From: Klebsormidium nitens
Lineage: Eukaryota > Plantae > Klebsormidiophyceae
Length of the DNA: 64,000 bases
Assembly (NCBI GenBank): GCA_000708835.1
Contig: DF237264.1
Location: 1-64,000 of the forward strand
Reading direction: 5' to 3'
Of this stretch, positions 18,646-62,619 are shown in pieces. The position numbers and the translations under genes are program-made. Under the pieces are notes generated by a model. That model saw nothing but the letters and a program-made list of their open reading frames with translations, ran no database searches and was not told where the DNA came from. Position 1 is the stretch's first letter, and each line of letters begins with the position of its first letter.

Positions 18646-18903
18646 GCTTACGTATTTTATGGAAGACCAGGCAAGCGGCGCTGCAGGCGGGCGCGCGCGA
18701 GAGCGAGGAACTAGAGGCGGGAGGCGCGGCCGCGGAGGGCGCAGGGAAGAGCGCAGCAGTAGCTTAAGCTGACAGAGTTGGTCGAAGACCAGGCGGCGCT
18801 ACAGGCGGGCGCGCGCGCGAGCGACAAACTAGAAGCGGGAGGCTGATCGAGGGTGCAGGAAAGAGCGCAGCAGTAGCTTAAGCTGACGGAGTTGGTCGAG
18901 GAA
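18541..18903 (+). repeat. Tandem triplication (plus a partial unit) of the last coding about 110 bp and stop of the PH-like gene
   Basis: Units aagctgac.gagttgg..gaagaccaggcggcgct.caggcgggcgcgcgcg..agcgcagca.tagcttaagct, joined at an AAGCT microhomology. Confidence 0.9.
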
Positions 18904-20209
18904 CGGCCGTGCCGCCCTACATAGAGGCGGGGGCCGGGTGGGCGCGGGCGCGAGGATGTGTTTTCAAAGCGTGCGGGACACCACTTAAGTCAGAAAGATT
19001 TGACGGTACGTCGAGGGTTGCGTCGATCCAAGGCGCGGATGTGGGTGCCGGGGCATCAGTGGGTGCGTACGTCAACTTTGATTCATGGCGCGCATTGTGA
19101 TCACTTTTCAAGTTCAAGTGAATATGATTGGATCACTCATCCCCCAACAGACATCACATGATCAGAATTGTTGTATATGATTATAATGAATGAAGCTTAA
19201 TTGGAAGACGCTTGGAACAAGCGTCTGACCTGTACTTAAGACAGTGACACCAACGCTGATTCTTGCTAATCTGGAAACCGCGAATAGTGAGAGTGCGTGC
19301 GGCTCTGCCATTCGAACTAATATCATTTGCATGATCGGATGGACTAACCGTACGTACGTAGCCGGCCTCTTGTGAATTAATTAGAGTCTTAAACAAAATT
19401 TCCCATGAAGCCTGTCACCGGGTGGCCCATGACCGTCTGTGTCGGGTTTGGTTGCACATGGCGTAACTTTGCAATTAAGACAACCCGATCATTTGTTGTA
19501 GATAGAGTCTGGCCAGTCCATATGATTGATACCATGACTATTATCACACAAACGCGTTTAACTTACCCGCGAATTGCATATGTATCCATATATGCGCGTA
19601 CATACCTACATGTATTAACCGTTGAGCATGTTCACACAGCATGCAGCGATTAGTGCGCCGGGTCCAGTGATTCACGAGTTCTGCCAGCCCGCATTCAAGC
19701 CGGGCTTAGATCTTATAATGATATATTGCATGCATCACACGGCATGCATGCCAGTGGGTTCTCGGTGCGAATCCGTTCACGTCAATTCAAGTACGGTAAA
19801 GGGTGACTCAGTGTGCAGCAGCAATCTGACTCGGAGAGCCATTATACGTGCATAATGTCAGCAGCAATCATATCCATGCACACCGCAGCCGCGCAGCGAT
19901 GAACCACTGGCATTCGATGATCCAGAATCTAAAACGTACATACGCAATCGTGCCGGGCACCGCCGGCCAAAGGTAAGAGCTGCAAGCTCTTGAAGAAAAG
20001 CACATTGTCATATCCAGATGAACATATTGATCATCGGATGGGGTAATTAGTGGAGATGGGTCGACTTCAACTGCCCGTCGGGGGATAAGGCGCTTTGCCT
20101 TTCCCCGCACGGATGCCTTCAAGTGCGAGCGGGATGGTAAGACGAACGCTTACATTTTACGACAAGGGCCGGAGTTCGACTCGGCTTGATACCTTTATGC
20201 CGAAAGGCC

Positions 20210-23200
20210 TCACAACCGGTGCATATTAAGCGAAGTGGGCAGCGGCGCCCCTCGATCCTGCGACCCCTGCTTGGTCGACATGATCGCTACGGCCGCCCCT
20301 AACAGCGGCAGGACTAGAACCCACTTAATAATCCGGTAGAAGTACATGTTGAAAAGCACCGCAAACTCGTCGCTGTAGTAAAGCTTGTGTTCGTCCTCCA
20401 TTTCCAGAACGACGTGGGCGTGCGTGCGAACGGGGGGGACGGGAAGCCGGACGGTGTATACCCCGGGCATGGAGTAGGTTTGTCGAACTTGGTGCGTTTT
20501 GTGACCGGGGGCCATTAAAGAGACCTGTAGAAAGGGTACACCAAAACAAGGTTAGTGTGGGACGTCAGCAGGGTGGAGATGCGGGAATGGTGTGCCACCT
20601 CTGAATTCCTAAAAGATCAACTTGACGTCATTGCAGTAACAGGTACCGTCTGGATGGTGCCACGTGGTCATGGGACTGCCGATGTCGGAGATGATGCAGA
20701 ATCAACAATTGTACCCCGCGTTATTCTGACCAATTGTGCCCTTATCGTGGCAAGCACACACGGATTCTTCGGCTGCACACCACTTAACCTCCCTGCACTT
20801 GGGAGGTCGCTTTCAATCCCTTTCATTCCTTGTGTTTTGCTCCGCATGGCGAAACGTGGTAACGCCGCTACCTGGCAAAGACTCCAAAAAACCGGCCGTC
20901 CAACGAACAGCGTTGAAACCGTTTGTAATGTAGCAGAAGCCCTAAAACGCACAAATGCCGACAAGCTCAGAAGGAACAAGGCCCAATACTTTCTCGTAGC
21001 AGCCTCACCGTGACAGTGTAATTGGTCCCCATTGGCCCCAGATCGAGCACCTCAAATTGCACGGGGAAGCTTTCCCCGCCCATGTCCCGGAGTTGCCGCG
21101 AAGATGGCAGTGCGGATACGCCCTTGGTTTGCCGGGGAAAGGCTGCGTTACGGTGGTGGTTTTGGGCGGGCCATGCCTGCAACAGATCAAAAATAAATCT
21201 GGGCTCTCAGAAAAGTGCTTTGGTACCGACTGGCATTCATATCCGCGCCAAAACGTCTCATTAGTGTTGCAGTAATCGACGCACCTTATGGGACTGCCCG
21301 TTTAGAAGCAGGTTAACGCTTGAGTTTATCAATGCCACCAGCAGGAACATTTTTGGGGGCCACATTCACACAAGTGATCGCAGGACCAAAGCCCTAGGAA
21401 CGAAACTCAGGAAGAAGCCTGAAAGGGGTATTACCAGATCCCTGAAAAAGCCTGAAAGGGGTATTACCAGATCCCCCTTCAGGCTTCTTTCTGAGGGGGC
21501 AGTGAGGAACCTCCCTCTGTAAGCAGTAAGCGATCCCGTTCATCGGGTACGCAAAGAAGTCACTCTCTTCCAGATTCACTGTTGACAACAATGACTCAAG
21601 GACAACTCACCAAGAGGCTACAGAATTGGAAACTTAGGAAATCTGTGTGATCACCGCCCCTTAAGCAAATGATAGAGGACCTCCGTCTGGAAGCAGTCCA
21701 CGTTCCCATTCACCGTCTTCAAAAACATTTCTCTTCTCTTACACGAAGTCTGTAGAAGATACGAACCAATATACTGCCGAAAAGTTGAGCAATCAAACTC
21801 CGAACACATCCAAGAGATCAATTCACCTTGAGAGGATGAAAGAGGACCTCTGTCTGGAAGCAGTACACGTTCCCATTCATGGTCGCCACCAGCAGGTCCA
21901 TCTCCGGCCCCCCGTGCACGTTCTCCGCGAGCACCATGCTATACGCCGTCTCCCCGACGTCGATGACGTCAGCGCACCCGGTCTCGCCCTCGATCATGTA
22001 CACGAACCCGTCGAATGACGTCACCACGAGGTCCAGCCCGGCGCCCCGCGGCCGCGAGCGCTTGAGGTTGACCAGCAGGACGGGAGCCATCACGCGGCCG
22101 TGCGTGCGGAACGGGAACGGCGCGACGTCGAGGCCGGTGTCGCCGCGGACCGCATACACGTGGCCGGACGTCGTGCCGAAGACGACCTCGGCGTGGCCGT
22201 CGCCGTCAACATCGCCGACCGATACGCCCTGAAGAGAAAACGAGAAACTGATGTTTCAATGTCAGGGACTTTCGAATCCAGGTTTGGACTCAGTTTGCAA
22301 GAGATTGTATTGCTGCGAATCGCGTACATGCGGTCGGACGTCGTGCCAAAAACGACCTCGGCCACGTAATATTGACTTTCAGGGGTTCAGGGAGACACCG
22401 CAATGCGGGGTGGGCAGATCTGGGATAGAAGGCGCGCATTGTGAAGCCAAGAACAGCGTACACGTGCTCGATCGTCGTTGCTTAAAACGACCTTAGAATG
22501 GCCGTTCCTTTCATTGTCGCCGGGCCTTGGTTTTCCAACCAAGACAGACTCTCATTCCTCGCATGCGAAACTTTCGACCTCCAAACACATCCATCTATTT
22601 CCCGCAGCCGATCGATCTTGCCCCACATGTGTCAAGATCGACTTGATCCGTCGATATGACAAAGAGTGCCCGGGAAACGTGGCCAGTACAAATCAATAAC
22701 TGCAGCCTAATGTGGGGCCAACTGGAAGCACTCCGACAACTCAGCCGATGGGGGATACAATTCACACATGCTTTGCCAAATGACGGTCCGGCGTTCTGCG
22801 TATTGGGACAAGAGCTTCAACATTCCTAATATGAGAACCTGAACAAATGAGCACAATGTGACGGCGCGGCCGTGACGCGTACAGTGACCACGAGCGGCCA
22901 AACGACACGCCTTGCAAGAAGCGCGACCTAACGAGAACTGGAAGAGCTTTGAGAAACTTTGATCTGGAAATGAAGGCTATTCCTTTGTAACAGATGACTT
23001 GATTGATGGCTCGTCTCGCTGAAGAACTGGAACAACTAGATGGGTGACACCTTCATCAGGGTCGGTCTTTCGTCCCTGCCGATATAAGGGACTGCCTGAA
23101 AGCGCAGAGTCAAGAAACCAAGCAACTCGCCGTCAACGGGTGGAAATTATCTGGGACGAGGAGTCCTCGAGATGTAGAAACGGCCGGCGATTGGGGCCTC

Positions 23201-26200
23201 GCACCAGTAAAAGTCCACCTTTTCCTCGGTTTCCCCCCCCCTTACAAAGGCTGACTACCGGTTTCCGCATTGGGCTCGGTACAAAAGCTAGACAGCTCGC
23301 ATGCAGCAGAATCAGAGTGAAGGAGCATCGCCAACCAACTCGCCTGCGAGATCATGGATGCCACGTGGCGCTCCCACAGCTCCCGGCCCCGCCAATCAAA
23401 GGCCGCCACGTTGCCCCGGGTGTCCACTCCAACGATCTCTAAGAACCCGTCGCCGTTGATGTCTGCTGCGACCACCTGACCCTGAATCTCGCCCATCTGA
23501 ATCGGGAAGTTCTCCCGGGGGTAGCCTGAAAAAACGGAAGATGGGCACTTCGCTTCAGTGAACTCAATGACCTTGGCATTTGCATTTTAATTGTGCTCGC
23601 GTTCTGGCTCAGGGATCCCAAATCAACGCCTTGATCTCGCCATTTGGATCGGGAAGTTCTCCCGGGGGTAGCCTGAAAAAGCAGAAGATGGGCGCTGTAC
23701 TTTCAGTGAACTCAATTAGAGTTGCTCTGCGTTTTTTTAGTTCTGCTCCTAGTGTTCTGGCTTTGGGATCCTCAGTTGACCCTGGATCTCGCCCACGTGG
23801 ATTAGAAAGTTCTCTCAGGAGTAGCTTGAACAAGCAAACGGTGGGCAGATTCCAGTCAGTGTCAGATAGCCTTGTAACCTATCTTGTTTTTTTTGGCCTA
23901 GCTTCTTGATATGAGAATCGTGACAGCGTTGCTCGGAGATTCCTGAGTCGGGACTTTAGATTTCTTTTGGGGATAGCCTGGAAATAGCAGAAGACAGGGA
24001 CGTTCAAAACTTACAGACCGGTCATCTCGTTTCTTATCTAGGTTCAGCTCTGGAACCCGTGTTTGCGTGTGTTGGGAAATCACTAAGCCACCCTGGATCT
24101 CGCGCACATTTCATTGGAAAGTCCTTCCGCGGGTAGCTATATGAAGCGGATACTGGGATAGTTTTCGCATCAATCTGGTATTCTTTGTTTCTGTGCGGCA
24201 TCCTGGGCTGGGAACCCGTGTAAGCGGGTGTTGGGGACTTCCAAGTAGCCTAGATATCGCCATTGCAACCAAATGCTCTTCGTCTGCGGACCCCCGACAA
24301 GTAGCCCAATCAAACAAGAGCAGCGTTTGGTTACGGAGCGCTCGACTGATATTTTCAACCTCAGCAGAACCGAGCACTTACCGACGTGGCTTAGGCAGTA
24401 AAGGAAGCCCTCGCTGGTGCCCACTAGGATCTCCATGTAGCCGTCTCGATCCAGGTCGACAACCGTGGGGTGAGAGTAGATGTAGGCTCGGTATTGGGTT
24501 GCATCGGTGGACAAATCTAGGTGGACGCTCCACTTGACGCGCATGTCCTGCAGATGATGGAGAAACTGGGGTTAGAGACCGGAGTTACGGGCTTGACTCA
24601 AGGGATTGAAGACTGGGAAGTATGGTCTCAGACTCTGTTTTGGGGTCTAGGAATCAATCGAACTGAATTTGGCATGATCCGACTCTAGTCATCACTGGAC
24701 GCCAAGGACGGGTCCAAGTTCACCTTGACGCGCATGTCCTAGAGATGTTGAGAGAAAGGCTTGAAGAGGGCGTCTACGTGACGTCATCACTGGGCCTTTT
24801 AAAGCAGGCCAGGCTTAAGTCATCGGGCCCAGACGCTAGTATTGATTGTTGGCGACAGGCTACCGGAAAGCCGTCCTCTAATATCCCAAGTGACGTTAGG
24901 GACTACGGATCCCAAATCCTTCTCGTTGAGGACTTGAGTATAGGTCAGACGGGACGAACCTATCTACAGTTAATGCATGACAATGTGCATTCTGACTGCC
25001 TTCAGCGATTCTTGCGAATCTTTTTCAAAGAAGAGCTTGTCGATAAGGAGGGAGACCTGAACACTGTAGTCGTCAGGCTTCTTCCTGAAACCCACGATAT
25101 CTCAGGTGATGTTCTCGGAAGAGTCAACATTGATAGTTACTGGAACCCACAACTCGAAGCCTGAAGCAACAAATGCCAAAAGCCCACACTTACAACAAGG
25201 TCGAACGCAACGATCCCGCCCGCAATGTACTTGTGCAAGTCGATGCCCTCCGGCAACTCCTTGGCATGCGCAGGGTCCTCGTAATACTCCACGTCGAAAA
25301 AGTACGACGCCGCAACAACGAGCTCGTCGCGCCCATCGCTATCAATGTCCGCAACCACCTGGTGAGAAGAAGCAAAAATATTACCACTCTAGTTTTCGTT
25401 GTTGGTGTAAAGAAGTAGAGCTTACGCCCGTTATATTTTCCGTTTTTAATGTGAAGAAGTGGGATCGCCCGACCTGGGTTCTTGACTTCCTTCAGTCCAG
25501 TGTAGTTTCGCTTGCAAGAGTTCGTTCAAAGAATGGCAGCCGTGACAACTAACTCGCCGCCTCCATCGCTGTCAATGTCGGCGACCACCTGCTGTGAAGA
25601 GGCCAAGAGTTAACCCACTCTGGTTTCAAAAGCAGAGGATTCTTCTACTCTATTTTTCTTGGTGAAACTTCCGTCAAGAGAAAAGGCGCTTGGACGGCCT
25701 CTTCGCCTTGCCCATTGCCCAACTCAAGTTCCACTCTCCGCTGCTCAAGGGGGAACGCAGACTGTGCGCATGCACAAGTACAAAATTCTCCCTAGCGTTG
25801 CCGCCAATCCTCAGCACTTGTGAAACATGTGCTATCTGTGACAGCACATTTTCATCCCCAAACCTGCAGGCAGCTGCATGCTTCCAAAGGCTCCCGTCTC
25901 TTAAGAGGCGAGCATTGATTGTGTGCACACACACAGAGTCCTTTCTACCGCGGGTGCGCCTTCTCACCAGTCTCAGCATTCCAACTTTGTCACTCGTCCC
26001 AGAAACGCAATCGTCATCCCCAAAACCTTGGTAGAAGTAGTGCCCAATTTCGCCGCCACTTACCGGCGAGCACAGAATGTGTGCGTCCACAAACACAAAG
26101 TCCTTCTCCATCTCGCGTGCGCCTTCCCGCCACTCCTCGTCCGCCCACATCTCCTCCGCATGCTCAAAGTCAAAGTCGTCAAAGTCCCACTCAGGATCGT

Positions 26201-47133: not shown

Positions 47134-50100
47134 CTAGAAGTGCACCGGAAGCGCTGTCTTCTTGCCGCACAAGTTCTCCACAAGTCTCAGTGTCATGGAA
47201 ACGAGCCTGCACGTGAAGCAACGACGCCGTTATTTCAGTCCAAGATTTCGAGCCGACTCTCTGGGGCGGAGACCCACACGCATCTAGTGAAGCTGGAGTA
47301 ACTTCACCAGTTACTTTTTGCATGGTAAGTCCTTTCTCTGTTTCAAGATATTAGAGAGACAAATATGAACGGGTATGAGGTGGGCGTAGGGGTACCGTTA
47401 AGTGACTTATCTTCAAAATAGTAAAGCCTTATACCGGATTCGATTTTGATTGACGTCTTTACCAGATGCCGGAAGGGGAACGACCGCTTGCATTCGACTC
47501 TTGCTGCAGAAGAAAATACCTGATTCAGACCGAAAAACGCGTATTCTCAAGGACAAAAGCTGACAAACCGCTAACTCAAGTCTTTCAAAATGCGCGCACA
47601 GACTCCGACTCGAGGAATGAAGGGTGATATACGTACTGTGCGTCGCCGATGCGTTAACGGGCGCTTGCCGACTCCAGCGATCTTGCAGATCTCGAGATTT
47701 ACAAGAATAGTTCAAAAAGACCTGGAGTACAGAAACCTAACCAAGTGAAGACCTTAAACAGAAGGTGCCCACAAGCGATTTTGAAAACAAGATGCGAACA
47801 GGCTGTCGGATGCTGGTAGCACATAGGTTACAATTCCGAGCAACGATCGCGCGTCTTAAAGTTTACATGCGCTAAAGATACCCTGCAGGTTGAAAGCGTT
47901 GGTGACGTCAGCAGCACCGAGCCTTGAGCCTTTCGTCGGGAACCTTCCCCCAGTGAGAAGACGGACAAAAACAAAGAAACGTAACATGGGGCTTGCGCGC
48001 GCGCGGTCGCGCGTTGAAGACCGCCGCTCAAGATGGCCAGCAGCTTGGACTTACTGCGACTGGAAAGGAATATGAGCTCTGGGCTATCAACCAAGAAAAT
48101 AATCATTAAACTAAAAAGTGACGGGCGCGCGCGCGCTCACGCGTTGACTACGCCGCTGAAGATGGACAGCAGCTGCAGCGCAATCATGGTGTAGCCCAGC
48201 GCCTCCTCGTTCCTGCGCAGCTGCCCCTTCGAGTTGACGTCCTGCTTCACCACGAGCGCCAACGCCAGCGTGACGACAGCAAGCTCGCACACGGTGCTGA
48301 AAATCTCGGCCAGCTGGAGGGGCGCGCGGATGAAGGGCTGCGGCGACACAGAGTTTGGCGATTCAATCACAGTTCTCCGAACCAACCCCGTGCGAGATTC
48401 TACGGGACGGGTCTCTCGTTGGAAGCCTCTTGTGGATCTGTTTCGGGTCACTTTGACGTCAGTGAAATTGGCAAAACGTACAGCGGCCGAACAGCAGCTC
48501 GGCCCGCACGGGCGGACGAAGGATTGCGGCGGAAGGGGTTTCAATTGAAAAGCAAAACGCAACTGACATGTTTAATTGAGCAATTTCAACCGTTCAGATC
48601 GAAGCCTCGAGAAATTGAGTGTGTGAAGAAAGCAAAGACGATGAAGACGAGTTCGGAGGAAGGGGCCCGTTTGAGGGTTTGTGGCCTCACCTTAAGGAGG
48701 ACCAGCACAATGACGAAAAGTCCGCGCATGGAGACGATAAGGCAGACCTGCCAGTACGACGAGCGCACGCCGTGCGTGGCGCCCAGCAGAGCCGCTTCAA
48801 TGGCCTGCATTCGGGGGCACTTGACTTTTGAGAAGAAGATAGTAACGGGTGGATGACTTGGGTAGTCAGGTCGTGATCATAAGGCTCAGGTCCTGAACCC
48901 CAAAGGTCAAGATGCAAGTAACCGGTGAGTCTTAGCCAGCAGAGCCGCTTCCATCTCTTGGATCGTAGGGAGAGTTGGCTTGTGATTAACGATGAGAACG
49001 GCGAGGTTTACTTCGAACATCGGTGATTACGATTTGCGAGATGCAGGTCTCAACAGAGATGTAAGCACTCGCACACCGTAAAATGCAAGCACACGTGAAT
49101 GCATGTGAAAGCAAAGACTTGACTCAACGCCTGCTGGACCATTTTCTCTCCCAAGTGGTGAAAACCCTACGATCCCCAAAGGCCGTAGAACCCGGGCGCC
49201 ATCTACTCATCACAAATGATACATCGTCTTGAAATAACAGAAACATTGAAACTCTAGTTCTAAGACCTTGGAACTCTACGATTCTAAGAACCCAAATCAC
49301 GTAATTGGGGCCCCGCCTTACTTACCACCACCAGCACTGGGTACATCATTTCCGACCCCAATTTCTCAAACCTCCTTAAAACCTTCAGATTCTACGATTC
49401 TAAGAATCCAATCACGTCATCGGGCCCCCGCCCTACTTACCACCACCAGCAGGTACATCATTTTCCACCCCGGCCGGAAGTGCGTCGCGAAGCCCACTCT
49501 TCCGACCCGATGAACCGACCGCACGTTTTGCAACCGGGAGAGTTTCCCGGACGCTTTGCCGGGCGCCGCCTCGAGCGGCGCCTCCCACTTGACCGACGTG
49601 GGTCTTGCGCCAACTTTTTCTTCCGCGGGTGTGACGTGGACGACGTGCTTCCCCTCCTCCTCTTGGACTTCAATGACGTCAGCAAGTGGCCCGCTCCTGA
49701 CCTCTGGCAATGAGTCGCTATTCTTCTCGGTAGACAAGTCCTCGCCCACTTCCGGTGCCGCGCCGGAACGACTGGTGAGCGGAACGGAAAAGTCTTCTAC
49801 GAAATCCTCCTCTCGGGCGCCAGAAACGATGGAATCGACGGCCGGAGACCATGAATCGCTTCTTCGGGAGCGCGTCTTTAAGGACAGAGTGGTCGGGGCG
49901 CCCTTACGGGTCGCCGAGCGCATCAGCGACCCGGCGATGTTCACCAGTTCGGAGGGGCGACCGGAGTAGTCGGCGTAAAAGTACCCGTACTTCGCACGGA
50001 AGAGGTCGCCTTCTTCGGAGTCTACCGGCTCCCACGAACCGACGAAGGGGGCTCTGAACCAAGCCGTGGAGGCCCCCCTGCGTCGTTGCTCGGAGACGAA

Positions 50101-53100
50101 AGCGACCGACTTGCTCTGGGGGAGAAGAAAAGCCGCAACTTCTCGAAACCTCTCTTTTTCTTGATATTAGTGAATGGGCTTCTTCCCTTTGAAGGTGTCT
50201 CGAACTTCAAGCCGGAGCGGGCAATTTATTTTATACTAGGAATCTGCATCTCATTGCGAGTCAGGCACACTCTAAGCAGGTGAACGCATCGATCCGCTAA
50301 AACATACAAATCAAAAGGTCTGGGTTTACCCGAGACTTCAGAGCGGAAGTGTGACCAAGTCAGAAGAGAGCAAAAAAGGGAGGTCAAATTGTCAGGGGGG
50401 TACTGAGCATTTAGAGATTGGAAAGGGCGATCTAAAGGCTTCTAAACAGCTGAGAGCACGGAGTCAAAAGGGAATGTTTGGTACAGCGGGCTCTGATCGT
50501 CACCGGAAGAGAGAAAATCGGAGGCAGCAGTAAAAGCAGCACTTCGCTCAAGCACCAAAAACACGGATGTGGTTGATTTACACTCGTATGTAAGGGTTGC
50601 AAAGACTCCCAAAGATTTTGATGTAGCGAAGGTGGAAAGCGCATACGTGGCGGAAGGATGAGAGCTCTCACCATGTGCACGTGGCGCCACAGGATTGACA
50701 GCACGAACAAGAAGAAAACGAGGATGAGGAGCAGAACGGCCAGGCCCAGTACTATGCCCGCTGGCGATTTACCTGCGCGGAAGAGTCAGCACATTCTCAA
50801 CATGGTGTACACGAAAAACTCGAAGAAGAACGAATCAGTGCGGCCTAGCGTGGTAGAGTGACTTGGAACCCGAGCATGCTCTAGAAACGAGAACGAAAAC
50901 AGATTCTACTGAGAGAGTGCGGGACAGAACTACGTTTTTTTGTCTTGACGGGGACCACATGTGATGTAGAGCTTTGCACAGACAAGTCTTCCGGTATTCA
51001 TGGCCCCTTCTCTACAAGATTCATTAGCGCATCTTTGCACGACACGTGTCACCACTCACCCACGATCGCTCCCAGCGCGACGTAAGCGAGCGCCACGATT
51101 GCGACGGAGAAGAAGGTCAGCTCTAGGGCGGGGAACACCAGGAACGAGGGGACCGCTTCTCGTTTGAGGAGTCGCGCCAGAGGTTTCGAGGCCAGCTGGA
51201 GAAGTCCGATACAAATCAGGATCATGGTGATCCAAAACACCGCCCGGAGAAAGCCGCGCAGCCTGCAGATTATGTGGCAGAGAGTGATTTCGAAAGTGAG
51301 TATATCCTCGTAAGTACCCAAATCAATCGTTTAAGTCCGAGGGTTTAGGGAAGTAAGCACAGTCACCGTCTTCTCGTAGAAAAGAGAGCTTCATTAAGAT
51401 TGCCAGAGTGCGGAAGACAGGCGGAGTTGGTCTGGATAATCAGGATATTCCCACGAACAAAGCTGCGCGAGCGTCAAACACAGGCCGGTTCAAAGACCCG
51501 TCGCATCTATTTCCTCACCCGTTATGGCCCACCGTATGGAACAGGTTGAGCGTATTCACACTCAGCTCTTGGCTGTAGATTTCGGCGCGCGCCTCGTAGG
51601 AGATGTTTCCTTCGCTGAAGGTCACGGGACGACCCTGGTTGATCAGCGACGCGTTAGCCGGAATGAAACGGTTCGTCGTTGACAGATTAAACGGAACGGG
51701 CGGAATTGTCCCGTCGAAAGGACCGGGCACCGCGGTTCCGTTGGTAGACGTTCTGCTGTTAGCCGTTCCGTTGATTACTGTTCCGTTCCCCAGCTGGGCC
51801 TGGAGCAGCCGCCGGCCGAGCCGCTCCCTCGTAGCCGCTAGCGTTCCGTTCGTTCCGCCGGACGGAACGCCGGAACTTAGCCCCTGTGGGCGGTCCGTAT
51901 AGGGGATGGGGCTGTCGCGCGTGATTCTGTCGAATGGCGACGGCCAGCGCATCAGGGAGAAGGAGAGAGCGGAACTGGCGTCGATATAGGGCGTCGGCAA
52001 CGGGGCGTTGAGGCTCTGGCGGGCGGCAAACAGGCTCAAGCTGGAAGCCACGTTCTGCGGAAACAACCAGAGGTTTTAGGATTTCCAAATACTGATGGAA
52101 GTTTGAGATCGGAAAGCAAAAAACCTTCGCGGAGGATTAGACGACAGTTTGAAGACAATTCAAGAAACAATTCTTGAAAACTACGTGGACTCTCCGTGAG
52201 ATCTTTCAGGACATGCAGTTCATCGGCCGGAGCTTTTGGCACTGAAAAGGCGCTTGAGAAGATTCTGAGTCCGGCTGATCAGAGCCTCCTTATGAATCTT
52301 GCGGAAGCCCTCTGGGTAGCGGCAAACGAGAGGACTGAGAAGCTGGCGAAAGCGAACAGACATGTAGAAAGCCGAAGGTCTGACGTCAGCATTCACGATG
52401 GTGCCCGTCATGATTTCTCGTGTACCAAGAATCAAATCCTGGACACGGTGCAGCGGAAGAATATAACATGGGAAACCAAACAGGTAGGAATGCTGAACCC
52501 AAGAGGAACAAAATTGAAGACGCACGACCTGACTCCTCGTGTAACCAAGAGACAAACGGTAGGGGAGTCTTTGGCCCTCAATCATGTTTGGTTATGGGCT
52601 AGCTATGGGCTGGTCACAAAAGGCTTAACTGTCGAGGAACCAGACTTGCGCGATGATAATTTGGAACAGGGTTAACATCAACCTGAGAATCGATTCTGAT
52701 GAACAGCCTGGTTAACAGCCAAGATCTCCCCTGAAAGCAAAAAGAGCTGAAGCTCTGCAGGCTGCGCTCAAGATGATCAAGCTCGAAGACGCAAAACCGT
52801 GTACCCAGAAACGAAAAATGGGGGAGGGAAGCAAGAACTAAAGTCGAAGCTATGCAGTTTGCACTTACGATTAACGAGCTTGAGGACGAAAGAATTGCAT
52901 TCTCGTGTATCAATGTGACTGAAGATTGGAAAGAAAGTGAAAGAGTCGAAGCTTTTCCTTCTGCACTGACAATGAACAAGCTCGACAACGCCTGGAAGAC
53001 TCATATGATCGTGCACAAAGAAACGAAAGATTCGAAATGATAGCCAATAAAGGCCGGAACTCTGTCGTCTGCACTCACAATGAACAAGCTCGACGACGCC

Positions 53101-56100
53101 TGGATGAAGAAAGTTCCCGCCGCCATTACCCCCAGCGACGCGATCGCGGCCGCGCGCACGCCCGTCTGGAGCCTTTGGTCAACGTTGTCTACGAGGGTTT
53201 AAAGGTTTCAGGGTGTTAGGAGACGCTAGTTAGAGCCGCTGTTCACTTCTACATTCGAGGAAACCCTATTTTGAGCTTCTTAGATTGTGTTCCGATTGCG
53301 TTCATGGGGGTTTGTCCAGTGATTGAAGCACGCTGAAGGCAGGAGTGTCGTTACGCAAAGCCCTAACGGCATCAAAGATGCTCGCTTTCAAAGTAATAGC
53401 GGCTTTGGATGTATGTAAGCTCATTACGCCTGGATGATTTTTGGGCGAAAGCAGACTGTTTGCAGACCTGGCTTATGGGTTCACGAGAGGGATGGAGCCT
53501 CAGGCGGCGATACAATCCCATTTTTCAGCCTCCAAATCAATCTGCCGGTACTCTAGTTTGCATGCAGCAGAATTTTGAAAGCATTGAACGGTAGGTCCAG
53601 ATTGAAATGCCTCGCGGCGACTTACTTTGGGGGCTTGGAAGCTTCAACTTTATCGTTAGAACGGTTTCATACTAGACGGCGCTTTCCGCCTTCGCAGAAG
53701 TCTTCGAAACCCCGGACGAGCAAGCGCCCAACACGCGGGGGGGGGAAAACAAGTGCCGAGAGAGCAAGCGGCCACGTGGCGCACTGCGAGTGGCGAGAAT
53801 GGTCGCTTACAGTTGAGCACTTGCAGCTGATTGGACGCCGTGTTCCCGATCCCCACGATGCTGTAAGCGCTGTCCGCGGGGGCTTGGATCACGAGGTTAG
53901 CGTTCGGGTCAATGACCACGGTTAAGACGTACGAAAAGCCGTCTGCGGTGGCGGCATTCGGACCGGCCCTGCAGCGGACAGAAAATTGGTTCCAACCGTA
54001 ACCGAGAACGTGTTACGAGAGGATTCAGGGCTGGGTTGTGAATGTGAGCCAGTGCTTATGGCTTTTGTGCCTGCCAAGGCCGCTATAAGCGGAGTGGGGA
54101 CGGTATTAAAACGACTTCAACAACGCTTTCGGCGGGCTCTCGGGCGGAGAACTTTGCAGTGAATCATTACCTATGTCAGCAGGAAACACCGGAATCCGAG
54201 ATCTTAAAGCATTTAGTCGGGGACGGGTCAAAATTACCGCAGAAAGCCGATGACACGTAAGAACGATCAGTAAGTAAGAAAAGTTCTGTGTTAAAAGTTG
54301 ACAAAGCTCTCCGCATCAACCATGACGAAACCCAGGAAGCTCTTTCCAAGCCTGAAGTTGCAAGCCTCTGGCGAGCCCTGCAACCACCAAAATCTTCTAA
54401 GTCAGAAAGTATCCGGCACTCACTTACCGAAGTTTTATCGTGTTGTTGAGGTTACAAAATGTAAAGTTTGACTCACTCGATCAGCGTCCCGTTTTGGATG
54501 ATCATCGAAGTCGCGTCGAACCCCAGAACTCGCTTGTCGAACGACAGCACGACGGTCACGACGCGGTCGGGGGAAACCCCCGGGTCCGGCGAGAGTGACA
54601 CGACGCCATTCGGATCCTTATTCACCAGTTGCAGGAGGGCGCTGGGGGGAACAGTGTCTGCACGGAATTAACGGAGCAACGTATGGGTGTGATTCCTTGT
54701 TGCATTCGTAAATGAGCCGTCACTACAGCCGTTGGGCAAAAGCGCCGCGAGCAATGCTGGGGTGTTCGAGGAAAGCCGCGTTCAAAATCCAACTAGTTAA
54801 ATCTTCAGATTGCAGCGGGTTGTGGAGTGGTTCCAGTCAGAGCGTAGGTACAACCGGATGAATAAGATTCTTCAATTTAGCAATAGTAAGCTTCAGCAAT
54901 AGTAAGGTAACTGGCAGCCTGGGACGGGTAGGGTTAGTTTGGGGGTTAGGGTGGGTTCGGGTGCGGAGCGGGTGATTATGTGGTTTAGGTTTTTAGTGTT
55001 AGTGCAGAAGCTTAATATTGCTAGCTCTTACTATTCCTAAATTCAAGAGACATCGGATGAATGCGAAGGAGAGCAGTACAGTACTGACCGTAGTATATGA
55101 CGTAGGCAGCCTCCGACGTCACTTGGATGGGGTTCCCCGCCTGGTCGAAAATGTTCCCGGGATTAACCGCAACTCTCAGCAGCTGTGGGCCGGAGCCAGC
55201 CGGGACTACCTGGAGCAATCAGGGCATTTTTCTGATCAGAAGAGTACATCCATTTCGTGAACGTTTACTCACGTGGGCGCTTTTTGAATATAGAAAAGCT
55301 ACCAACAAAAGATAGAAGAGCCACCGCCCCCTTCTCTCTATGCCTTCGCTTAGAGCTTTTGTTGTATAGAATTCTCAAACACTGATAGTTTGACAAAAAA
55401 AGGTATTTTGCTGTAGGTTGTAAAGATCCATCCAAATCTTATGTTTCAGGTTTGGAACACCCATGGAACAAATCGGCCTGGGTCCTTTCAGAATCAGCGC
55501 CTCAAAGACTGGGCTCCAAATGATGGTAGTCCTCTCGAGGTGTTCGAAGATGACGCAACTCCTGTTTAAATTTTTTTAGTTGACAGCAAGTTTATCTTGA
55601 TTTACTGTGTGTCTTGTTGCAATCGGAAGAGGGGCTTCCAGATGAAGACGAAGAGCATCGAATTGTGGAAAGCTACAAAGCATTCTTATACGCCGCTCGA
55701 GCGCTCGCCTGAAAGCTGTAGGCGACCGTTCCGGACGAGTTCCCCCCCAGCGCGGTCGCCTGCAAAAGCGCCCTTCTCCGCGCCCTTCCAGTTGGATCTT
55801 CTTTCTTTACGTTCACAATCTGGGCTCCCTCCAGGTTGAAGGAGTCGGGGCTCAGATCGCCGATCGGTTCGCTGGCAACCGCGTAACCCGGGAAAGGCTG
55901 GATCGTCGCCCAGGTTATGAAGACGGTTTGCTGGCCCGTGGAGGCGTCGATGAAGACCTGGGGGGACTCGGTGCTGTCTGCTTCGAGGGCGATCGAAATG
56001 GTCGGGGAGACCGTATCTGCAAACAAGTCAAGTTAACGAGAATCATCTTCTTTGTCTTCAATCCAGAGGTGAAATTGTTACACGGAGGGTAGGGCGATCA

Positions 56101-59100
56101 AATCGGTAGGTGCGCCCATTTAAGCGGACAAGACGTTGCGACTCATAGTCGTTTCACAAGAGACGACATGATTAGGGCTCAATAGAGGGAGCGGCTCTCC
56201 TTGTCGAAAGTCTTCGTCACATGTTTGGGGAAGTTCGCAGACGACACTGACAAAGCGAGAAGAGAACATCTGGCCGAGGGTGTCTGCAGAAGCGGGTGCC
56301 GCTCAGGTGGCCCAAACCGCAAAAGTGTTTCAGTTTTGACTTGGGAACACAACGTGGAAGACGCTAAGGTGACGTCAGTTGAAGCTGAGATGGCGTTGGC
56401 ACGAAAGGCGCAGTGGCCTAGAGGAGTATAAACAAGTCTCCAGCTTCCGTTAGCACGTGCAGACGCTGCCCGTCTGCTGCTGAACGAAACTCAACGTTCA
56501 GAAAATTACAGATTACCCGCAGTCATCTCTGGAGCGACACATCCCCATATTTGCCGGTCAAGCTGCTCAAGAGCACACTCACCTCCGTAACTCAAGCCAT
56601 GATAAATCGAAGTGATTTGCGTGATTTGAACAGATTGTTTGTTTCATACATAAAAGAGTCGCGAAACGCCCTGTACTCACCAACGGTGAAGAAGGTGCTG
56701 AGTAATGCGACAGGGGCAGGCGCTTCCGGGGCGGGGTAAAAGGCGACCGTCACCCTGTGGTAGCCGTCTGACAGGTCGCCCGGCTGGGAAACCGCCTGGG
56801 TGCCTCCGCACGCCTCGGGGGTTCCGTCGTCGATCTTGGAAAAAGATGCAATCAACGAGAATTTGAGACGGGTCAAGGCCACACAAAAAGTGAGAACGAT
56901 GCACGCGCAATCAGTCTCGTTCTCGATCAGCGCGTCGCGGTAACGGATTGAGCTTGCGCTTTTATATTTGAGCGAAGGCTAGATCACCCCCTGCGCTGTA
57001 CGATGTCTCGATTCCGTGTCAGGACATTTGTTGCACAAGCACAAATTGCATCCTCCGTTTCTGCAATTGTACGCGCAAACCGCACCCTCCGGTGCTCCAA
57101 AACGTACGCCATTTTCTGTCACCATTCCATCGTTCAGAGAGTGGAATCTCCTTTGCCCGCTACGTTCGCACTAAAAGGTTACCACGTGCCATCGCCTCAC
57201 CTGGCACAGAGCCGTGCACGTGGGCCCGCAGAGGTCTGCCGTAGCTCCGGTGAGCTGATAGGGTATGGTCACCTTGGCATCGTTCGTAAAGTCCTTCGCT
57301 TTAGGCACCTGCAAAGGTCGAAGAGTAAACACGAAAGCGGAACTTCATGCTTCGCGACTTTGCATCCTTGCAAGCATTCAAACGGTCGTGAGAAGAGCAC
57401 TTCCGTTTCAAAGGATCGCAGAGGAGATTTGAGTGAGCTGGATAGAAGGGCTTTTTATTGTGAATCGAATGAAAGCTCGTCCACATCTTCTTCTCAGATT
57501 CTCGCTCTTAAAGCGCTGAACGACGGCAGAGACCTGTAGGATCGTTTTTCCGTTGCACAGATTCGCGGTCTGACGAGACTGTGCAAGAATTAGTGACTGA
57601 GCCTCGAGCCCGTCTCTACACTACGGAGCCCACATCAAGTTCTCACCTGAAGAACGCCACCAAAGTTCTGGGGCGTCGGACTGTTAAACTCGGCCGCAAA
57701 CTCGGCAGAACCGGGTATGGACTCCAGGTATTTCACCGTCCTCAAAAGCTGGGAGGATTCGGCCGGTTGGAACTCTCCGGGCAGACCCGGAACGCTTATC
57801 GTGTTCGTGGTGCTCGGGCTGACGACGTTCGAAGCGGGGACCTCGGTCGGAACGACGACCGGGGGCTGCGTGACGACGTCAGCCGGGGTGGGCACGGGCG
57901 TCAAGGGTGACGTCAGCAAGGCGACGGTGGGCTTGGGAGTAGAAACCGGGGCGGGGGTAACTAGAGTGGGGGACGGCGTCTTGGGCGAGACCGTCACGGT
58001 GGGAATCGGCGAGAGCGAGGGAACCGGAGAGATCGAAGTGACTGGAGTGCTGGTAGGGCTCGTAGACAGAGTAGTAACCGGGGTTTCGGTAACCAGGACC
58101 GACTGAGAGCTCATCGGGGTTTGGGTGGTTTCAGGAACCTCGGTCGTGACCGGGGTTTGCGTCGTAAGTGGAGGCTGACTAGTTTCTGGGGTTTCTGTTG
58201 TTGATGGGGTCTGCGTTGTGACCGGAGATTGGGTTGTCTCCGGGGACTCCGTAACGAGCGGGGTTTGGGTTGTAACCGGCAACTGGGTTGGGGCTGCGGT
58301 TACGACTGGGTTCTCAGTTCCCAGCGGGGTTTGGGTGTTAACCGGAGGATCGGTCGTGGTTAGGGTCTGGGTTGTGACCGGGGTCTGCGTGAAGACTGGG
58401 GATTGGGTTGTAACCAACGTCTGGGTTGCTTCCGGAGGTTGCGTAACAACCACTGGCAGGGTTTGCGTTGTAACCGGCACCGGGGTTGAGATTGGGGTTG
58501 CGGTTTCAACCGGGGACTGGGATCCAAGCGGGGTTTGACTGATAACGGGGGTTTGGGTTGTGACCGGCGCTTGGGTTGAGATCGGGGCTTGAGACCCAGT
58601 CGGGGTTTGGGTTAAAGCCGGGGTTTGGGTTGTTTCTGGGGCTTGCGTAACCGTCATTTGAGATGATACCGGCCCTTGGGTTAAGATCGGGGCTGGGGTT
58701 AAGACTGGGGGCTGAGACCCAGTCGGGGTTTGGGTTAAATCCGGAGTTTGAGTTGTTTCTGGGGCTTGAGTAACCGTCGATTGGGATGAGACCGGAAGTG
58801 GGGTTTCTATCGGGGCCGAGGTTGCGAATGGGGGCTGAGATCCGACCGCGGTTTGGGTGTTAACCGGGGGCTGGGTTATGGTCAGCGTTTGGTCGAAAAC
58901 TGGGCCCTGCGTCGTGCCTACTCCCGTCGGGACTGGAACTGCAGCTGTTTGCCCCGGTTCAGGGGTCCCAACCGGTGCTGACGTCACTTGGGTAGTCATG
59001 CCCGGAGCGGTCCCCACCGGTGCTGACGTCACCTGGGCAGGAGCACCGGTGCTTTCAATCGGCGAGCTGGGAGCGGGCGTCGCATCGACCGTAACAAGAG

Positions 59101-62100
59101 TCCCGTCAGAAGGGGGGCCCCCCATCAGCTGGACAACATCTGTTGGCCGGTTAGTACTTATAACGACCGGAATGTCCGGGTTTTGCGGGGGGGTGGTTGG
59201 AAGACCGGTGACAGCGCCCGCAGGGAGAGAAGATGCGGTCGGCGGAAGAGTGGTTTCGGTTAGAGGAAGAGTAGTCGGGTTAGGGGTAAGCGACTCGGTT
59301 GTGACCGGGAGCGAGCCGGTTGGGACCGGGGCGGTGTTTGCTGAACCTGGGGCAGTTGTACCGGGCTCGACGTCAGAAGAGACCGAGGGAACGGTTGGGG
59401 GGTTGGGGGACGTGGTTTCAACCGGGGGCTGCGTGGTGACGTCAGCCAGGGTGGGAACCGGGAGTTGCGTGGCCACGTTTGACGTCAGCAGGAAGGCGGT
59501 GGGCTTGGGCATGGGCGCCGGCGCCGGCGCCGGGGCTGTATCTAGAGTGGGCGAGGAAATGGGGAAACAGCGTCTTAGGCGAGGCCTTCATGGATGAACT
59601 GGGTGGAAGCGAGGCGATTGGGGAGACAGAATTGCTGACCGGGGCACGTGTGGGGCTTTGATCGGAAGATACTGGATTCACCATCTTTGCTTTCGTCAGG
59701 CAATAATACTGCGTCTTGGTGATTTTAATGTATGCTTCTTTGCGTCGTGGATGCTCCCTGTCTGGGATACCACTGATTAGAACAAGCAGGCCGCACTCGT
59801 TTGGGGACGAGTCCGAAGAAGAGAACAGGAGCACGAGCTTTCGAGAAGGATTCAGATCACCGGTGAAACAGCTAGAAGTGCGGGGCTGAGACACGCTCTT
59901 GATCAAGATTATTTACAGTGAGCGGAGTGTTAAACCAACTGCCTAGGAAACCCTTTCTTCAGTTTGAGCATACGGTTAATCAATCATTTTCGGCGACCAC
60001 AAGGCGCGGGCTGCCTCACCGTTGGCCTGGAGCAGCTTTCTCGCAGTCGCCAGACTGACGGAAGTGAATTCGTCCTCGGAGGCGCGTTTCAGGGTATAAT
60101 CCACGGCAGCCTGGAGTTGCGCAAATGTTTCCTCGAAAGCGGAGAACGGATCGGGAGCAACGATAACGTCAGCACCAGTGAGGTCAAGGCAGGAGACGGG
60201 CTCGCCGTTGATCGTGGCGGGGGGGAGCGGGACTGCGGTGAACCTGGGGGAGGGAAAGTGGAGTCCTGTTATGAGATCAAGAAGGTACGAGGCTGCTTCG
60301 TGAAAACCAAGGCTCGCAGGAAGGTATCGAAGTGTGATCGTTTGAATGGTTCTCGTCTGCAAGTTGGCATTTGGAAATGATTGACGCAACAAGTGGAAAA
60401 GCTCGGGCGAATCTTGCAGCCGACAGGATGCAAAGTATATGTACGAAGCATGCCATCGCAACGAACGAATGCTTCACCTCTTTGGAAAGGTGAAACCAGT
60501 AAATCCGAAGAACACCTTCTGAAACGCTCTGTAGATTTGAGGCCCAAGGGGAAAAAAGGGAAGAGAAAATAGCATTTGAGAAATAGGTCAAAATTGAGTG
60601 CGTCAATCATCCTGGAATAGTTTTTGTCTTTCGATCCATCTCACGCTACAGCTCAAAGTTAGACATAGAACCGGGCCCGAAGATTGTCCAGGAAGCTGAC
60701 CCACGGACACGTGGCTCACCCCTTGCCAGCTGGCACCGATTTCATTGTCTGCCACGTGACGGCCGCCCCGTGCTTGAGCGAGTTGTGGTGCAGAAACAGC
60801 GGCGCCCCGTCGGGGTCGTGCTGCACCATGGTGTGCCCGCAGAATCCGCCGGAATCCGTTTCCGCGCCCGCGGCGGCCACCGGCGTCCCGACCATGGCGA
60901 ACGGCGTTCCGGTCGCTCGGAACGCCAGGCGGAACGCCTCCTTGTCGCCGTTGACCAGCTTCTGGAACGGGGGATCCTTCGCGAGGAAAAACGCCAGGTT
61001 GAGAGCCCCCCAGGCGCGGCGTTTATCTACGAGGATCTGCCCCGATTCCTGCTCTTGCCCCCCGGGGGACACCCCCAGGATCGACCAGATCGGGTTTGCG
61101 GTGGCGGTCTGCCAGAAGTCCGGCCAGAAGAGTGCGCCGGAGGTCTGGTACTGGGCGGAACGGAAGAGGGCAGCGGGGTTGGCCACGGGAATGTTGTCGG
61201 CGTCTAGGAAGAGGACCTCCTCGAACGCCGAATGCAGGATTGCAAGAGGTTTCACCTGCAAAAGAAAGGGGAGAGTCTCAATAGGAAAGTTCTTTAGGTT
61301 TTTTGTTTTTTTAAAGAACTAACTTGCATGTGTTTAGGTACTTTTCAAATATCTTGTATGTAAGGGTGTATCAAAAGAGAAAGATGCAGCTGTCAACTTT
61401 GGCTGGAGACTTTGGTTACGATGCACAAGCGGGCCGCAATTGAAGCTCAAGAAAAAATGTGGTCAGGGTTTTAGATCAGAGTGTAAAAATGGTAGTTTAA
61501 GAAGGTCGAAAGAGCAAGATTGCAAAGGGCAAAAGGCTATCCCACCTGGAATGCGCGCTCCCCTTGGCTTGTGACCATGCTCCGAAGATCGTCGTCAGAG
61601 GCATAGTTGGCCACGTTTTTGACTACAAGCTTGACGTACGTGGCCAACAGGGAGCTCACGATGTCAGAAGTGACCTCACCAGGGTACCATAACTGCAGGA
61701 AGGTGCAAGCAGAGCAGGATTGTGGACTCCAACGCAAGGGGCCGATACAACGATCTCTGAGGGAAGGGGGAGGATAAATGAGGTTCTAGAGTGGGGAGAA
61801 TATGTCAGATCCCCCAAGGCAAGGGGTTGATTCAAGTGATCCGTGAAAGACGGCTGAGGACACACATCACATAGAAAGGGAGGAAGGATGATGGATCTCG
61901 AAGTCTGTGGGGGCACAAGAGATCTGTGAGATCGAGGAAAAGGGAAACACCAGAGGCCTTCCAGTAGAGAGAACGGACTGGTATTTCCCAAAGGGAGCCC
62001 AGAAGAGTACAGCTTCCAAAGACGCCCAGAGGGGGGAGAGGATGGAAGGTAGTTTTAAAAAGAAAGGTTTCCAAGACGAAGCTGGCTCGGGGGCGTGTAA

Positions 62101-62619
62101 AAGAGGAACAGCTGCAAAGACGGCCGCACTTTTCATCCTTGAAACATGTGTGCGTAGAATCATGCATTGGGTTATAATAACAAGCTAGTCTTCAGGTGCT
62201 CCCAAGTCGAGAGGCGCAGGGATCGGAGGTTCATAAATATGCAAGAAAGGGAACATATATATTCGAGAATGAAAGCAAAAACGCACCTCCACAGGCAGCG
62301 TAAACCCTTGTGACTGGAGCGTCGTCAGCAGCACCGGCACGTTTACCAGATCCAGCTTGGTCGCCGTAATCACCAGTCCCCGCCCTGCAAACCGTTCCGA
62401 GGGGTACTCTGGAGTCTGGGCGACGGCGGCCTTCCAGGCTGCTGTGAGGGCTGCCGACTCGCTGGAAAGTGCAGCCCAGTGGGGGGAGGAAAGAGCGTGG
62501 AAGTTGCAGTCGATATACTGTTCGCTGGGAATGCAGAGAGCGGTGCTGTGGCGGGGTGCAAAGGCAATGCACAGAAGCGCCAGGGAAAAGGAGGCAAATC
62601 GCGCCAGAGATGCAGCCAT
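47134..62619 (-). CDS. About 2057-aa fusion: signal peptide - GT71 alpha-mannosyltransferase - Pro/Thr mucin-like stalk - Ig-like domains - multipass TRP/Pkd2-like membrane domain
   Basis: 19 exons: 62619-62287, 61692-61546, 61255-60720, 60243-60020, 59541-57647, 57308-57201, 56834-56681, 56016-55709 (GC donor), 55209-55089, 54657-54477, 53968-53811, 53188-53079, 52054-51519, 51262-51060, 50772-50672, 50115-49441, 48804-48691, 48337-48141, 47206-47134. Total 6174 nt; every junction is phase-compatible and there is no internal stop. Confidence 0.8.
52563..52720. mobile_element. Dispersed about 150-bp MITE-like repeat, copy 2
   Basis: Homologous to 9561-9720; located in intron 12 of the fusion gene. 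Confidence 0.55.
54870..55046. mobile_element. MITE-like element with terminal inverted repeats and a telomere-like G-rich core, copy 2
   Basis: tcttcaatttagcaatagtaag ... cttactattcctaaattcaaga form inverted repeats (20/22). The core is near-identical to copy 1, and cttcagcaatagtaag matches the copy 1 arm at 15/16. Confidence 0.7.
57647..59541 (-). CDS. Single 1895-nt exon encoding a Pro/Thr/Gln/Val-rich mucin-like stalk
   Basis: TAG|AT ACA GCC acceptor (phase 1) and CAG|GTGAG donor (phase 0). Iterated TTQTPV and TQAP units, with an internal duplication of VTQAPETTQTP.LTQTPTGSQ at about 58560-58800. Confidence 0.9.
60020..62619 (-). CDS. GT71 (MNN2-like, Mannosyl_trans3) domain exons 1-4 of the fusion gene
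   Basis: GRGLVITA..LPVE|LWY, VKPLAILHSAFEEVLFLDADNIP (DxD), GALFWPDFW, EQESGQILVDK..W..L, GDKEAF.LAF, GHTMVQHDPDG.PLFLHHN are characteristic GT71 motifs. Confidence 0.93.

Follow-up and report, generated by a model that had tools for sequence, protein, structure and literature searches.

We analyzed a 64,000-nucleotide (nt) stretch of the genome of Klebsormidium nitens (assembly GCA_000708835.1, contig DF237264.1, positions 1 to 64,000; hereafter, the window) and a gene on its minus strand that runs from an ATG at 62619 to a TAG at 47134. The gene consists of 19 exons with a coding sequence of 6174 nt (i.e., 2057 amino acids [aa] plus the stop codon, with no internal stop), and its predicted product joins an N-terminal glycosyltransferase family 71 (GT71) domain to a mucin-like stalk, a series of putative Ig-like domains, and a multipass membrane domain. 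Klebsormidium, a land-dwelling streptophyte alga of an early-diverging lineage, is used in research on the origins of plant cell walls and of stress sensing. The locus corresponds to the public K. nitens gene KFL_003150070 (P0010 in our protein set; GAQ86842.1; UniRef100_A0A1Y1IA59; 1980 aa; "Glycosyltransferase family 71 protein"), which belongs to the same assembly, has exons identical to those in the window, and already carries the predicted GT71-stalk-Ig-membrane fusion, with PF11051 as its sole recorded domain. No mention of the KFL gene identifiers was found in the literature, and the papers naming both "GT71" and "Klebsormidium" do not treat this gene. An earlier note on this DNA had presented the architecture as unfamiliar; it is public as a predicted protein in the databases, no paper describing it was found, and what is new is the head-swapping family to which KFL_003150070 belongs.

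The exon chain was rebuilt from the raw sequence of the minus strand by reading it and by chaining exons with a script. Its two ends agree exactly with those given in the earlier note, as do the number of in-frame exons and the length of about 2057 aa. The junctions that the note had held to be compatible, between enzyme and stalk (60020|59541, phase 1) and between stalk and Ig part (57647|57308, phase 0), were confirmed on the rebuilt chain, and both motifs that it had singled out (F.AKYGYFYADY and LKPFIRAP) are present in the spliced protein. An open in-frame chain of exons is by itself weak evidence for one gene; the gene reading goes beyond chance because related loci compare alike and because the chain is nearly identical to public KFL_003150070. 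The 18 introns are 256 to 1024 nt long. Their donors are GT in 17 cases (GTGAG in 12 of these), and all introns are of the GT-AG type except intron 8, whose donor is gcgagc (55703-55708). Five related loci show GT[AG]AG at this site, which follows the conserved peptide AYSFQ; intron 8 is therefore a GC-AG intron in this copy, and the longer form of exon 8 is correct. An upstream ATG at 62757 was rejected as the start codon, because similarity to a K. nitens paralogue (L003, introduced below) begins only 10 nt upstream of the ATG at 62619.

The public model differs from our chain in carrying an extra 51-nt in-frame mini-exon (60528-60478; 17 aa, AFQKVFFGFTGFTFPKR) inside the GT71 domain, which is not conserved in the related loci L003 and L005 and would be either a misprediction or a copy-specific cassette exon. 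It also places the exon 5 acceptor 6 nt downstream, takes an "intron" out of the interior of the stalk, and shortens exon 8 by means of an alternative, nonconserved donor that sidesteps the GC donor. Separately, the introns of the window gene hold degenerate tandem "echoes" of the adjacent exon end and splice site: four copies at a spacing of approximately 100 nt follow exon 12 (52748-53107), and single copies lie after exon 16 (49261-49471), after exon 18 (47982-48147), and before exon 17 (48783-48963).

The order GT71-stalk-Ig-membrane recurs at three loci (i.e., the window and two others). The first of these is L003, a K. nitens paralogue at the end of scaffold DF237680.1 (KFL_007310050; P0012), whose GT71 part is 80% identical to that of the window. 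It reads "...ARKLLQAN|DTTPEP...", has a stalk of only ~35 aa, and continues with the same pre-Ig and Ig exons as far as the contig reaches. In the public model of this gene (L003 positions 10001-24319), an upstream piggyBac transposase (PF13843) is wrongly joined to the GT71-headed copy, whose actual start is probably MAATFLSHLA... and whose end lies off the contig. The second is L005, a 14.8-kb contig from run SRR23617307 that begins within GT exon 3 and extends through exon 4, a short stalk (~35 aa), and every Ig and membrane exon to the last one (...LPVHF). Its exons share only 80 to 88% identity with the K. nitens copies, which marks it as a separate locus, from another strain or species.

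Comparison of the three loci bears directly on whether enzyme and stalk belong to one gene. The window, L003, and L005 have in common a donor (AAYG|GTGAG) and an acceptor (TCTAG|ATAC) that both fall in phase 1 ("N|DT"). Exon 4 (60243-60020), the C-terminal piece of the enzyme module, which ends with ...ARKLLQAN and the phase-1 donor G|GTGAGG, is 224 nt long and shows 80 to 85% identity with zero indels across the three. Intron 4 (60019-59542 in the window) measures 478, 370, and 382 nt, respectively, with 60 to 66% identity and many indels that are not multiples of 3, while the start of exon 5 again has in-frame indels (24, 18, 6, and 3 nt; two 7-nt gaps sit at an arbitrary alignment cutoff). 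The ratio of nonsynonymous to synonymous substitution rates (dN/dS) against relatives is 0.15 to 0.42 for the GT71, Ig, and membrane parts, which indicates purifying selection. The synonymous distance (dS) is ~0.4 between the GT71 part of the window and that of L003 or L005, and ~0.4 to 0.55 among the three loci, so the arrangement has long been kept. On the basis of these comparisons, we regard a single gene as highly probable, and we infer a single transcript.

Several observations weigh against that reading. Our RNA evidence consists of Logan contigs from four runs; those that match the locus are short, have a depth of 2 to 4, and lie inside the stalk exon (~57717-59038), with no joint at either critical junction. 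In all three loci, moreover, a stop codon follows the exon 4 donor after 11 to 14 codons (in the window, a TAA at 59978 after 13 further codons), so that retention of intron 4 would yield a stand-alone soluble GT71 enzyme; this leaves room for an additional, intron-retaining isoform of that kind. These points would also fit two genes merged by prediction, namely, a stand-alone GT71 gene ending at TAA 59978 and a separate gene for the stalk, Ig, and membrane parts, and such merges do occur among the public K. nitens models (e.g., the piggyBac transposase and GT71 in KFL_007310050). The stalk exon, however, has neither a conserved ATG nor a signal peptide, whereas head-less relatives do have a signal peptide. 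The in-frame ATG at 59512, near the start of the stalk exon, was rejected as an independent start, since it is ACC in L003, exon 5 of L005 contains no in-frame ATG at all, and no signal peptide follows it; intron 4 contains no open reading frame with a signal peptide. Past the exon 4 donor, the read-through peptide (GEAARALWSPKMID, then the stop) is shifted out of frame in L005 by a 4-nt indel despite similar nucleotides, which argues that this tail is not under coding constraint. With the donor, acceptor, and phase also retained over the distances given above, we consider two merged genes unlikely. The fusion claimed in the earlier note is therefore well supported by the conservation of its junction at three loci, but no junction-spanning transcript was present among the four RNA runs.

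The state of this particular copy also has to be considered. The GC donor of intron 8 occurs in this copy only, and its expression looks low: the RNA depth on the stalk is very small, and the GT exons have no RNA contig at an identity of at least 99% in the four runs. Both features would be expected of a decaying, barely expressed copy (i.e., an incipient pseudogene). GC-AG introns can be functional, though, and 6174 nt free of stops and frameshifts, together with the dN/dS values of 0.15 to 0.42, make decay very improbable. A deeper contig from run X2 (485 nt; depth, ~100; 60774-61258) was rejected as evidence for the locus, since it is only 95.7% identical to GT71 exon 3 and so represents another strain or copy; two smaller X2 contigs likewise differ from the window. 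Run X2 probably derives from another strain with a well-expressed GT71 copy.

The enzyme module is encoded by exons 1 to 4. Exon 1 (62619-62287) contains the conserved ATG, codes for an N-terminal hydrophobic segment (residues 2 to 20; either a signal peptide or an anchor), and enters the GT71 domain; exon 2 (61692-61546) lies within the domain and is kept in L003; exon 3 (61255-60720) contributes the core of the domain, including the HHN region and the DxD motif (FLDADN). The GT71 identity proposed in the earlier note is borne out by the PF11051 (Mannosyl_trans3) match of the public protein (133.5 bits against a cutoff of 22; E value, 1.2e-38), with exon 3 alone giving an E value of 5.6e-31. 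The DxD motif aligns with LMDSDT of Mnt2 (PDB 7xjv), the overall similarity to 7xjv being weak (E value, 0.01). On these grounds, the mannosyltransferase head is probably intact and active. The N-terminal segment has a hydrophobic core of ~14 residues followed by a small-residue motif; in appearance it is closer to a cleavable signal peptide than to a type II anchor. Approximately 1640 residues follow the GT71 domain, so the protein does not have the layout of a stand-alone type II Golgi enzyme. GT71 domains are also predicted in fusion with DPY19 (PF10034, a multipass C-mannosyltransferase family) in two proteins of dinoflagellate type (P0013, from Logan, 1152 aa; P0014, from Symbiodinium, 1838 aa). 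The fusion of GT71 with a multipass domain is thus not unique to KFL_003150070.

Exon 5 (59541-57647; 631 aa) is rich in Thr (22.5%), Pro (19.2%), Val (11.4%), and Ser (9.4%), as well as Gln, and contains a 123-nt internal repeat. From this composition, its first ~560 aa would form a mucin-like stalk on the lumenal or outer side, with predicted glycosylation; a conserved module of ~60 aa (VPGLPGEFQP...GGVLQ) follows. Pfam searches with single exons yielded nothing beyond GT71 and a "Cementoin" match, which we discarded as a spurious low-complexity artifact. Exons 6 (57308-57201) and 7 (56834-56681) encode a Cys-containing, beta-rich domain (CGPTC..C..C), which is the best-modeled part of the AlphaFold model (predicted local distance difference test [pLDDT] score, 65 to 90; all beta).

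Exons 8 to 11 (56016-55709, 55209-55089, 54657-54477, and 53968-53811), the first of which ends at the GC donor, encode the putative Ig-like domains, which carry a "D(Q/R)AGNP" motif. Big_12 (PF19078) is the top match to the same domain in all three paralogues tested. A Foldseek search of the AlphaFold DB clusters returned as its top match an 882-aa "Bacterial Ig-like domain-containing protein" (E value, 4.4e-7; TM-score of at most 0.2, with a poor query model), and further similar AlphaFold DB entries followed at E values of 1e-4 to 1e-3. In a shape search of the Atlas, many Big_12 clusters appeared at TM-scores of 0.23 to 0.46, again with the poor Ig model as the query, and a Foldseek search of the same model against the PDB gave nothing significant.

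The membrane domain begins in exons 12 (53188-53079) and 13 (52054-51519), which encode the first helix or helices and a loop of ~185 aa that carries seven N-x-S/T sequons and a second R-R-L-L-Q motif. Helices 2 to 4 were assigned by hydropathy to exons 14 (51262-51060) and 15 (50772-50672). Exon 16 (50115-49441) accounts for a juxtamembrane motif that is conserved (WFRAPF..WEPVD..GD.F.AKYGYFYADY), a loop that is acidic and of low complexity, and the beginning of helix 5. The acidic loop that follows helix 4 spans ~225 aa and has this motif at its start. Helices 5 to 8 fall in exons 17 (48804-48691) and 18 (48337-48141), where the match to the Pfam TRP family (PF06011) lies, and exon 19 (47206-47134) encodes the conserved C-terminal tail (...GKKTALPVHF) and the stop codon. 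In total, hydropathy reveals eight clear helices, to which the model possibly adds one after helix 1, and the positive-inside pattern fits an N-out, C-in topology.

With the last 150 aa as the query, PF06011 was the top Pfam match in three of the four paralogues (profile positions 295 to 397 of 426), and the UniRef name of another family member, KFL_007310020 (P0001), is "TRP C-terminal domain-containing protein." The protein-language-model neighbors of the membrane domain are euglenozoan clusters, including DGF-1_C (0.92; 198 to 200 shared features), and 40 clusters of the PF06011 set (0.88). PF14558 (ML-like, TRP_N) gave no match in any paralogue at E values up to 10, and a profile search of the PDB with the alignment of the membrane part gave no match.

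Both the Ig-like and the TRP-like labels have evidence against them as well as for them. The Big_12 scores (16 to 18.4 bits against a cutoff of 27) and the PF06011 scores (13.2 to 16.5 bits against a cutoff of 28.5) are all below threshold. The AlphaFold models, a check that the earlier note had proposed, turned out poor: the mean pLDDT was 45 for the Ig part, in which beta-rich stretches reach 55 to 90, and 35.8 for the membrane part (modeled from four sequences), too poor for a fold search. The Ig-like and TRP-like labels of the earlier note, the latter taken here as the PF06011/DGF-1_C kind, are therefore consistent across paralogues and searches but subthreshold, and we consider them reasonable.

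Sequence relatives of the body (i.e., stalk, Ig, and membrane parts) carry different N-terminal parts. Two relatives, KFL_000930340 (P0011) and the metagenome contig L006, are head-less: each has a signal peptide of its own that leads straight into "...GSRKLLQLPSPPP..." and the stalk. Since these head-less relatives carry a signal peptide of their own, the body of the family is secreted or ecto-oriented and needs an N-terminal signal, which in the window is supplied only by GT71 exon 1. A further paralogue, at locus L002 (DF237673.1), probably bears another kind of head. Its public model (KFL_007240025; P0003; 999 aa) has an artificial start, placed where a 710-aa Pro/Thr-rich open reading frame ends; upstream of this frame lie an assembly gap (7258-7719) and, on the same strand, a separately called gene with a NIDO domain. 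The last exon of the latter is PKD-like by eye and ends in "YINVTG|GTGAGA" (phase 1), with a read-through stop six codons later, and a phase-1 acceptor (ttgcag|CCGCTCCA) opens the Pro/Thr-rich frame. The NIDO model lacks a signal peptide, but one is present in an open reading frame farther upstream, where "RQILQ" and Pro/Thr-rich sequence come next. We therefore predict that L002 positions 1063-19281 probably represent one much longer gene with a NIDO/PKD-like head, of which KFL_007240025 is the C-terminal part, in the order signal peptide, Pro/Thr-rich sequence, NIDO and PKD-like domains, a stalk of >1000 aa, Ig domains, and membrane domain. The public annotation splits this locus into several genes, including a doubtful minus-strand gene over Pro/Thr-rich sequence. 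Several public gene models are thus corrected by the present analysis. KFL_007310020 (87% identical) is cut inside the stalk by the contig start, so that any head would lie beyond the contig.

The heads recognized in the family are thus GT71 (three loci) and, probably, NIDO plus PKD-like (one locus); two loci have only a signal peptide. Where the head is GT71 or NIDO, a phase-1 intron lies between it and the stalk exon, a pattern expected from exon shuffling. Word-based searches with the Ig and membrane parts together, and with the membrane part alone, matched only four K. nitens paralogues. When exon 16 was searched exhaustively with HMMER against 1.84 billion representatives, only four true relatives emerged, all from K. 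nitens or Klebsormidium-like contigs; the other matches (P0005 to P0009) were rejected as unrelated repeat proteins, and the Atlas matches to exon 16 alone were rejected as chance phage matches. At the sequence level, the family appears so far to be confined to Klebsormidium and Klebsormidium-like DNA.

A short motif, R[RKH]xLLQ, is found at three conserved positions in all paralogues (residues 424, 1142, and 1429 of KFL_003150070; residues 110, 422, and 708 of KFL_000930340). The motif lies at the boundary between enzyme and stalk (ARKLLQ), in an insertion in an Ig domain, and in the first membrane loop, and it also occurs just past the signal peptide of the head-less relatives (GSRKLLQLPSPPP). 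In plants, type-1 pectin methylesterases are cut at RRLL or RKLL in the Golgi apparatus by a subtilisin-like protease (PMC4008260); type-1 enzymes lose their pro-region. In light of this precedent, release of the head by cleavage is a testable possibility: the fused precursor may be cut at R-K-L-L, and perhaps at the two other R-R-x-L-L-Q sites, by a subtilase of the S1P type in the Golgi apparatus, which would free a soluble GT71 enzyme. The conserved positions of the motif and its recurrence behind the signal peptide of the head-less relatives speak for such processing. On the other hand, its sole basis is the resemblance of motifs, and cutting at the sites in the Ig-domain insertion and the membrane-domain loop would fragment the protein, so we hold this proposal to be rather doubtful.

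The best explanation, which we favor with some reserve, is that the locus is one gene for a 2057-aa precursor and a member of a family with a constant body and variable heads. In order, this precursor would comprise a signal peptide or anchor, a GT71 domain of the Mnn1/Mnn2/Mnt2 type, the R-K-L-L site, the mucin-like Pro/Thr stalk, the small conserved module, the Cys-rich beta domain, Big_12-like Ig domains, a membrane domain of the TRP/DGF-1_C kind with eight or nine helices, and the acidic cytosolic loop. Through the signal peptide, everything from the head to the Ig domains would come to lie on the lumenal or outer side, with the multipass domain as the anchor; once the signal peptide was cleaved, a GT71 domain alone would be soluble, while in the fusion the C-terminal multipass domain would hold it. 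The sugar donor of GT71 enzymes is GDP-mannose, which is present in the Golgi lumen. Because the donor is available there, catalysis would be confined to passage through or residence in the Golgi apparatus, where the head may mannosylate glycans, possibly those of its own stalk or of co-traveling glycoproteins. At the surface, the glycosylated stalk would then keep the head within the cell wall and link it to a Pkd2/Flc-like domain that possibly senses wall or membrane stress. Topology, enzyme activity, location, and any sensing or channel activity are all inferred here, as is the general assignment of KFL_003150070 as a stalked protein of the surface or the secretory pathway.

Two considerations weigh against this functional picture. 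A GT71 enzyme at the cell surface would be without its sugar donor, and function cannot be transferred from studied proteins, because relatives were found only in Klebsormidium-like DNA. In a different account, the protein is a Golgi-resident enzyme that has replaced its type II anchor with a multipass domain and never acts as a surface sensor or channel. The need for lumenal GDP-mannose, the signal-peptide-like N terminus (which would leave the enzyme unanchored unless fused), and the predicted multipass fusions of GT71 with DPY19 would all agree with Golgi residence. The same body, however, occurs head-less or with a matrix-type NIDO head in relatives, which fits a surface protein better, and neither a stalk of ~560 aa nor four beta domains would be needed for anchoring; we therefore think permanent Golgi residence improbable. 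The head-less and NIDO-headed relatives argue for the body as a surface protein that would project its head into the wall.

A more far-reaching version of the surface-protein reading, which we offer as speculation and believe to be unlikely in its entirety, is that these genes form a family of wall-coupled, Pkd2-like stress sensors. Their shared chassis would have received its heads by shuffling via phase-1 introns, the head of KFL_003150070 would be an active mannosyltransferase that glycosylates itself or its neighbors, and cleavage at RKLL would perhaps regulate its release. Apart from this speculation, a membrane protein that couples a glycosyltransferase to a TRP-like domain by way of a mucin stalk, in a family with exchangeable heads on one chassis, would be a clear case from nature of surface proteins assembled by exon shuffling, and a concrete candidate for wall-integrity sensing or tethered glycosylation in the Klebsormidium lineage. 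If the protein is only a membrane-tethered enzyme, it would be a curiosity of one genus.

Among known systems, the fungal GT71 enzymes (i.e., Mnn1, Mnn2, Mnn5, and Mnt2) share with KFL_003150070 the PF11051 domain and the position of the DxD motif. They are stand-alone type II Golgi proteins, whereas the head of KFL_003150070 stands behind a signal-peptide-like segment and is followed by ~1640 residues. With Schizosaccharomyces pombe Pkd2 and Saccharomyces cerevisiae Flc1 to Flc3, the protein has in common a signal peptide, a large extracellular N-terminal part, and a membrane domain of approximately nine helices. In Pkd2, the signal peptide is accompanied by an extracellular domain and a TRP-like membrane domain; the protein has a link to cell-wall integrity (PMC6727746), and its calcium permeability is reported to be stretch-activated (PMC9727806). 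KFL_003150070 differs from these proteins in falling below the PF06011 cutoff, in having no ML-like/TRP_N domain, in its ectodomain (GT71 plus stalk plus Ig), in its acidic cytosolic loop of ~225 aa, and in its short C-terminal tail without a coiled coil.

The nearest language-model neighbors of the membrane domain are the trypanosomatid DGF-1 proteins (DGF-1_C) and unnamed euglenozoan and oomycete clusters. These neighbors, too, have a C-terminal multipass domain, and they are very large surface proteins; the ectodomains are unrelated, and the likeness is a lead that comes without an alignment or an E value. For the Ig region, the best structural matches are the "Bacterial Ig-like" proteins of the AlphaFold DB and the Streptophyta Big_12 clusters, and one Streptophyta cluster (~1046 aa, Big_12) is also among the feature neighbors of the membrane part. 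These Big_12 proteins were not reached by sequence search, their TM-scores are low with a poor query model, and no GT71 head is recorded for them. In layout, KFL_003150070 also resembles yeast Wsc1 and Mid2, in which a head, a heavily O-glycosylated Ser/Thr-rich rod, and a membrane anchor follow one another. Wsc1 and Mid2 are wall-integrity sensors with a single-pass anchor and are unrelated in sequence to KFL_003150070, so the resemblance is a functional analogy.

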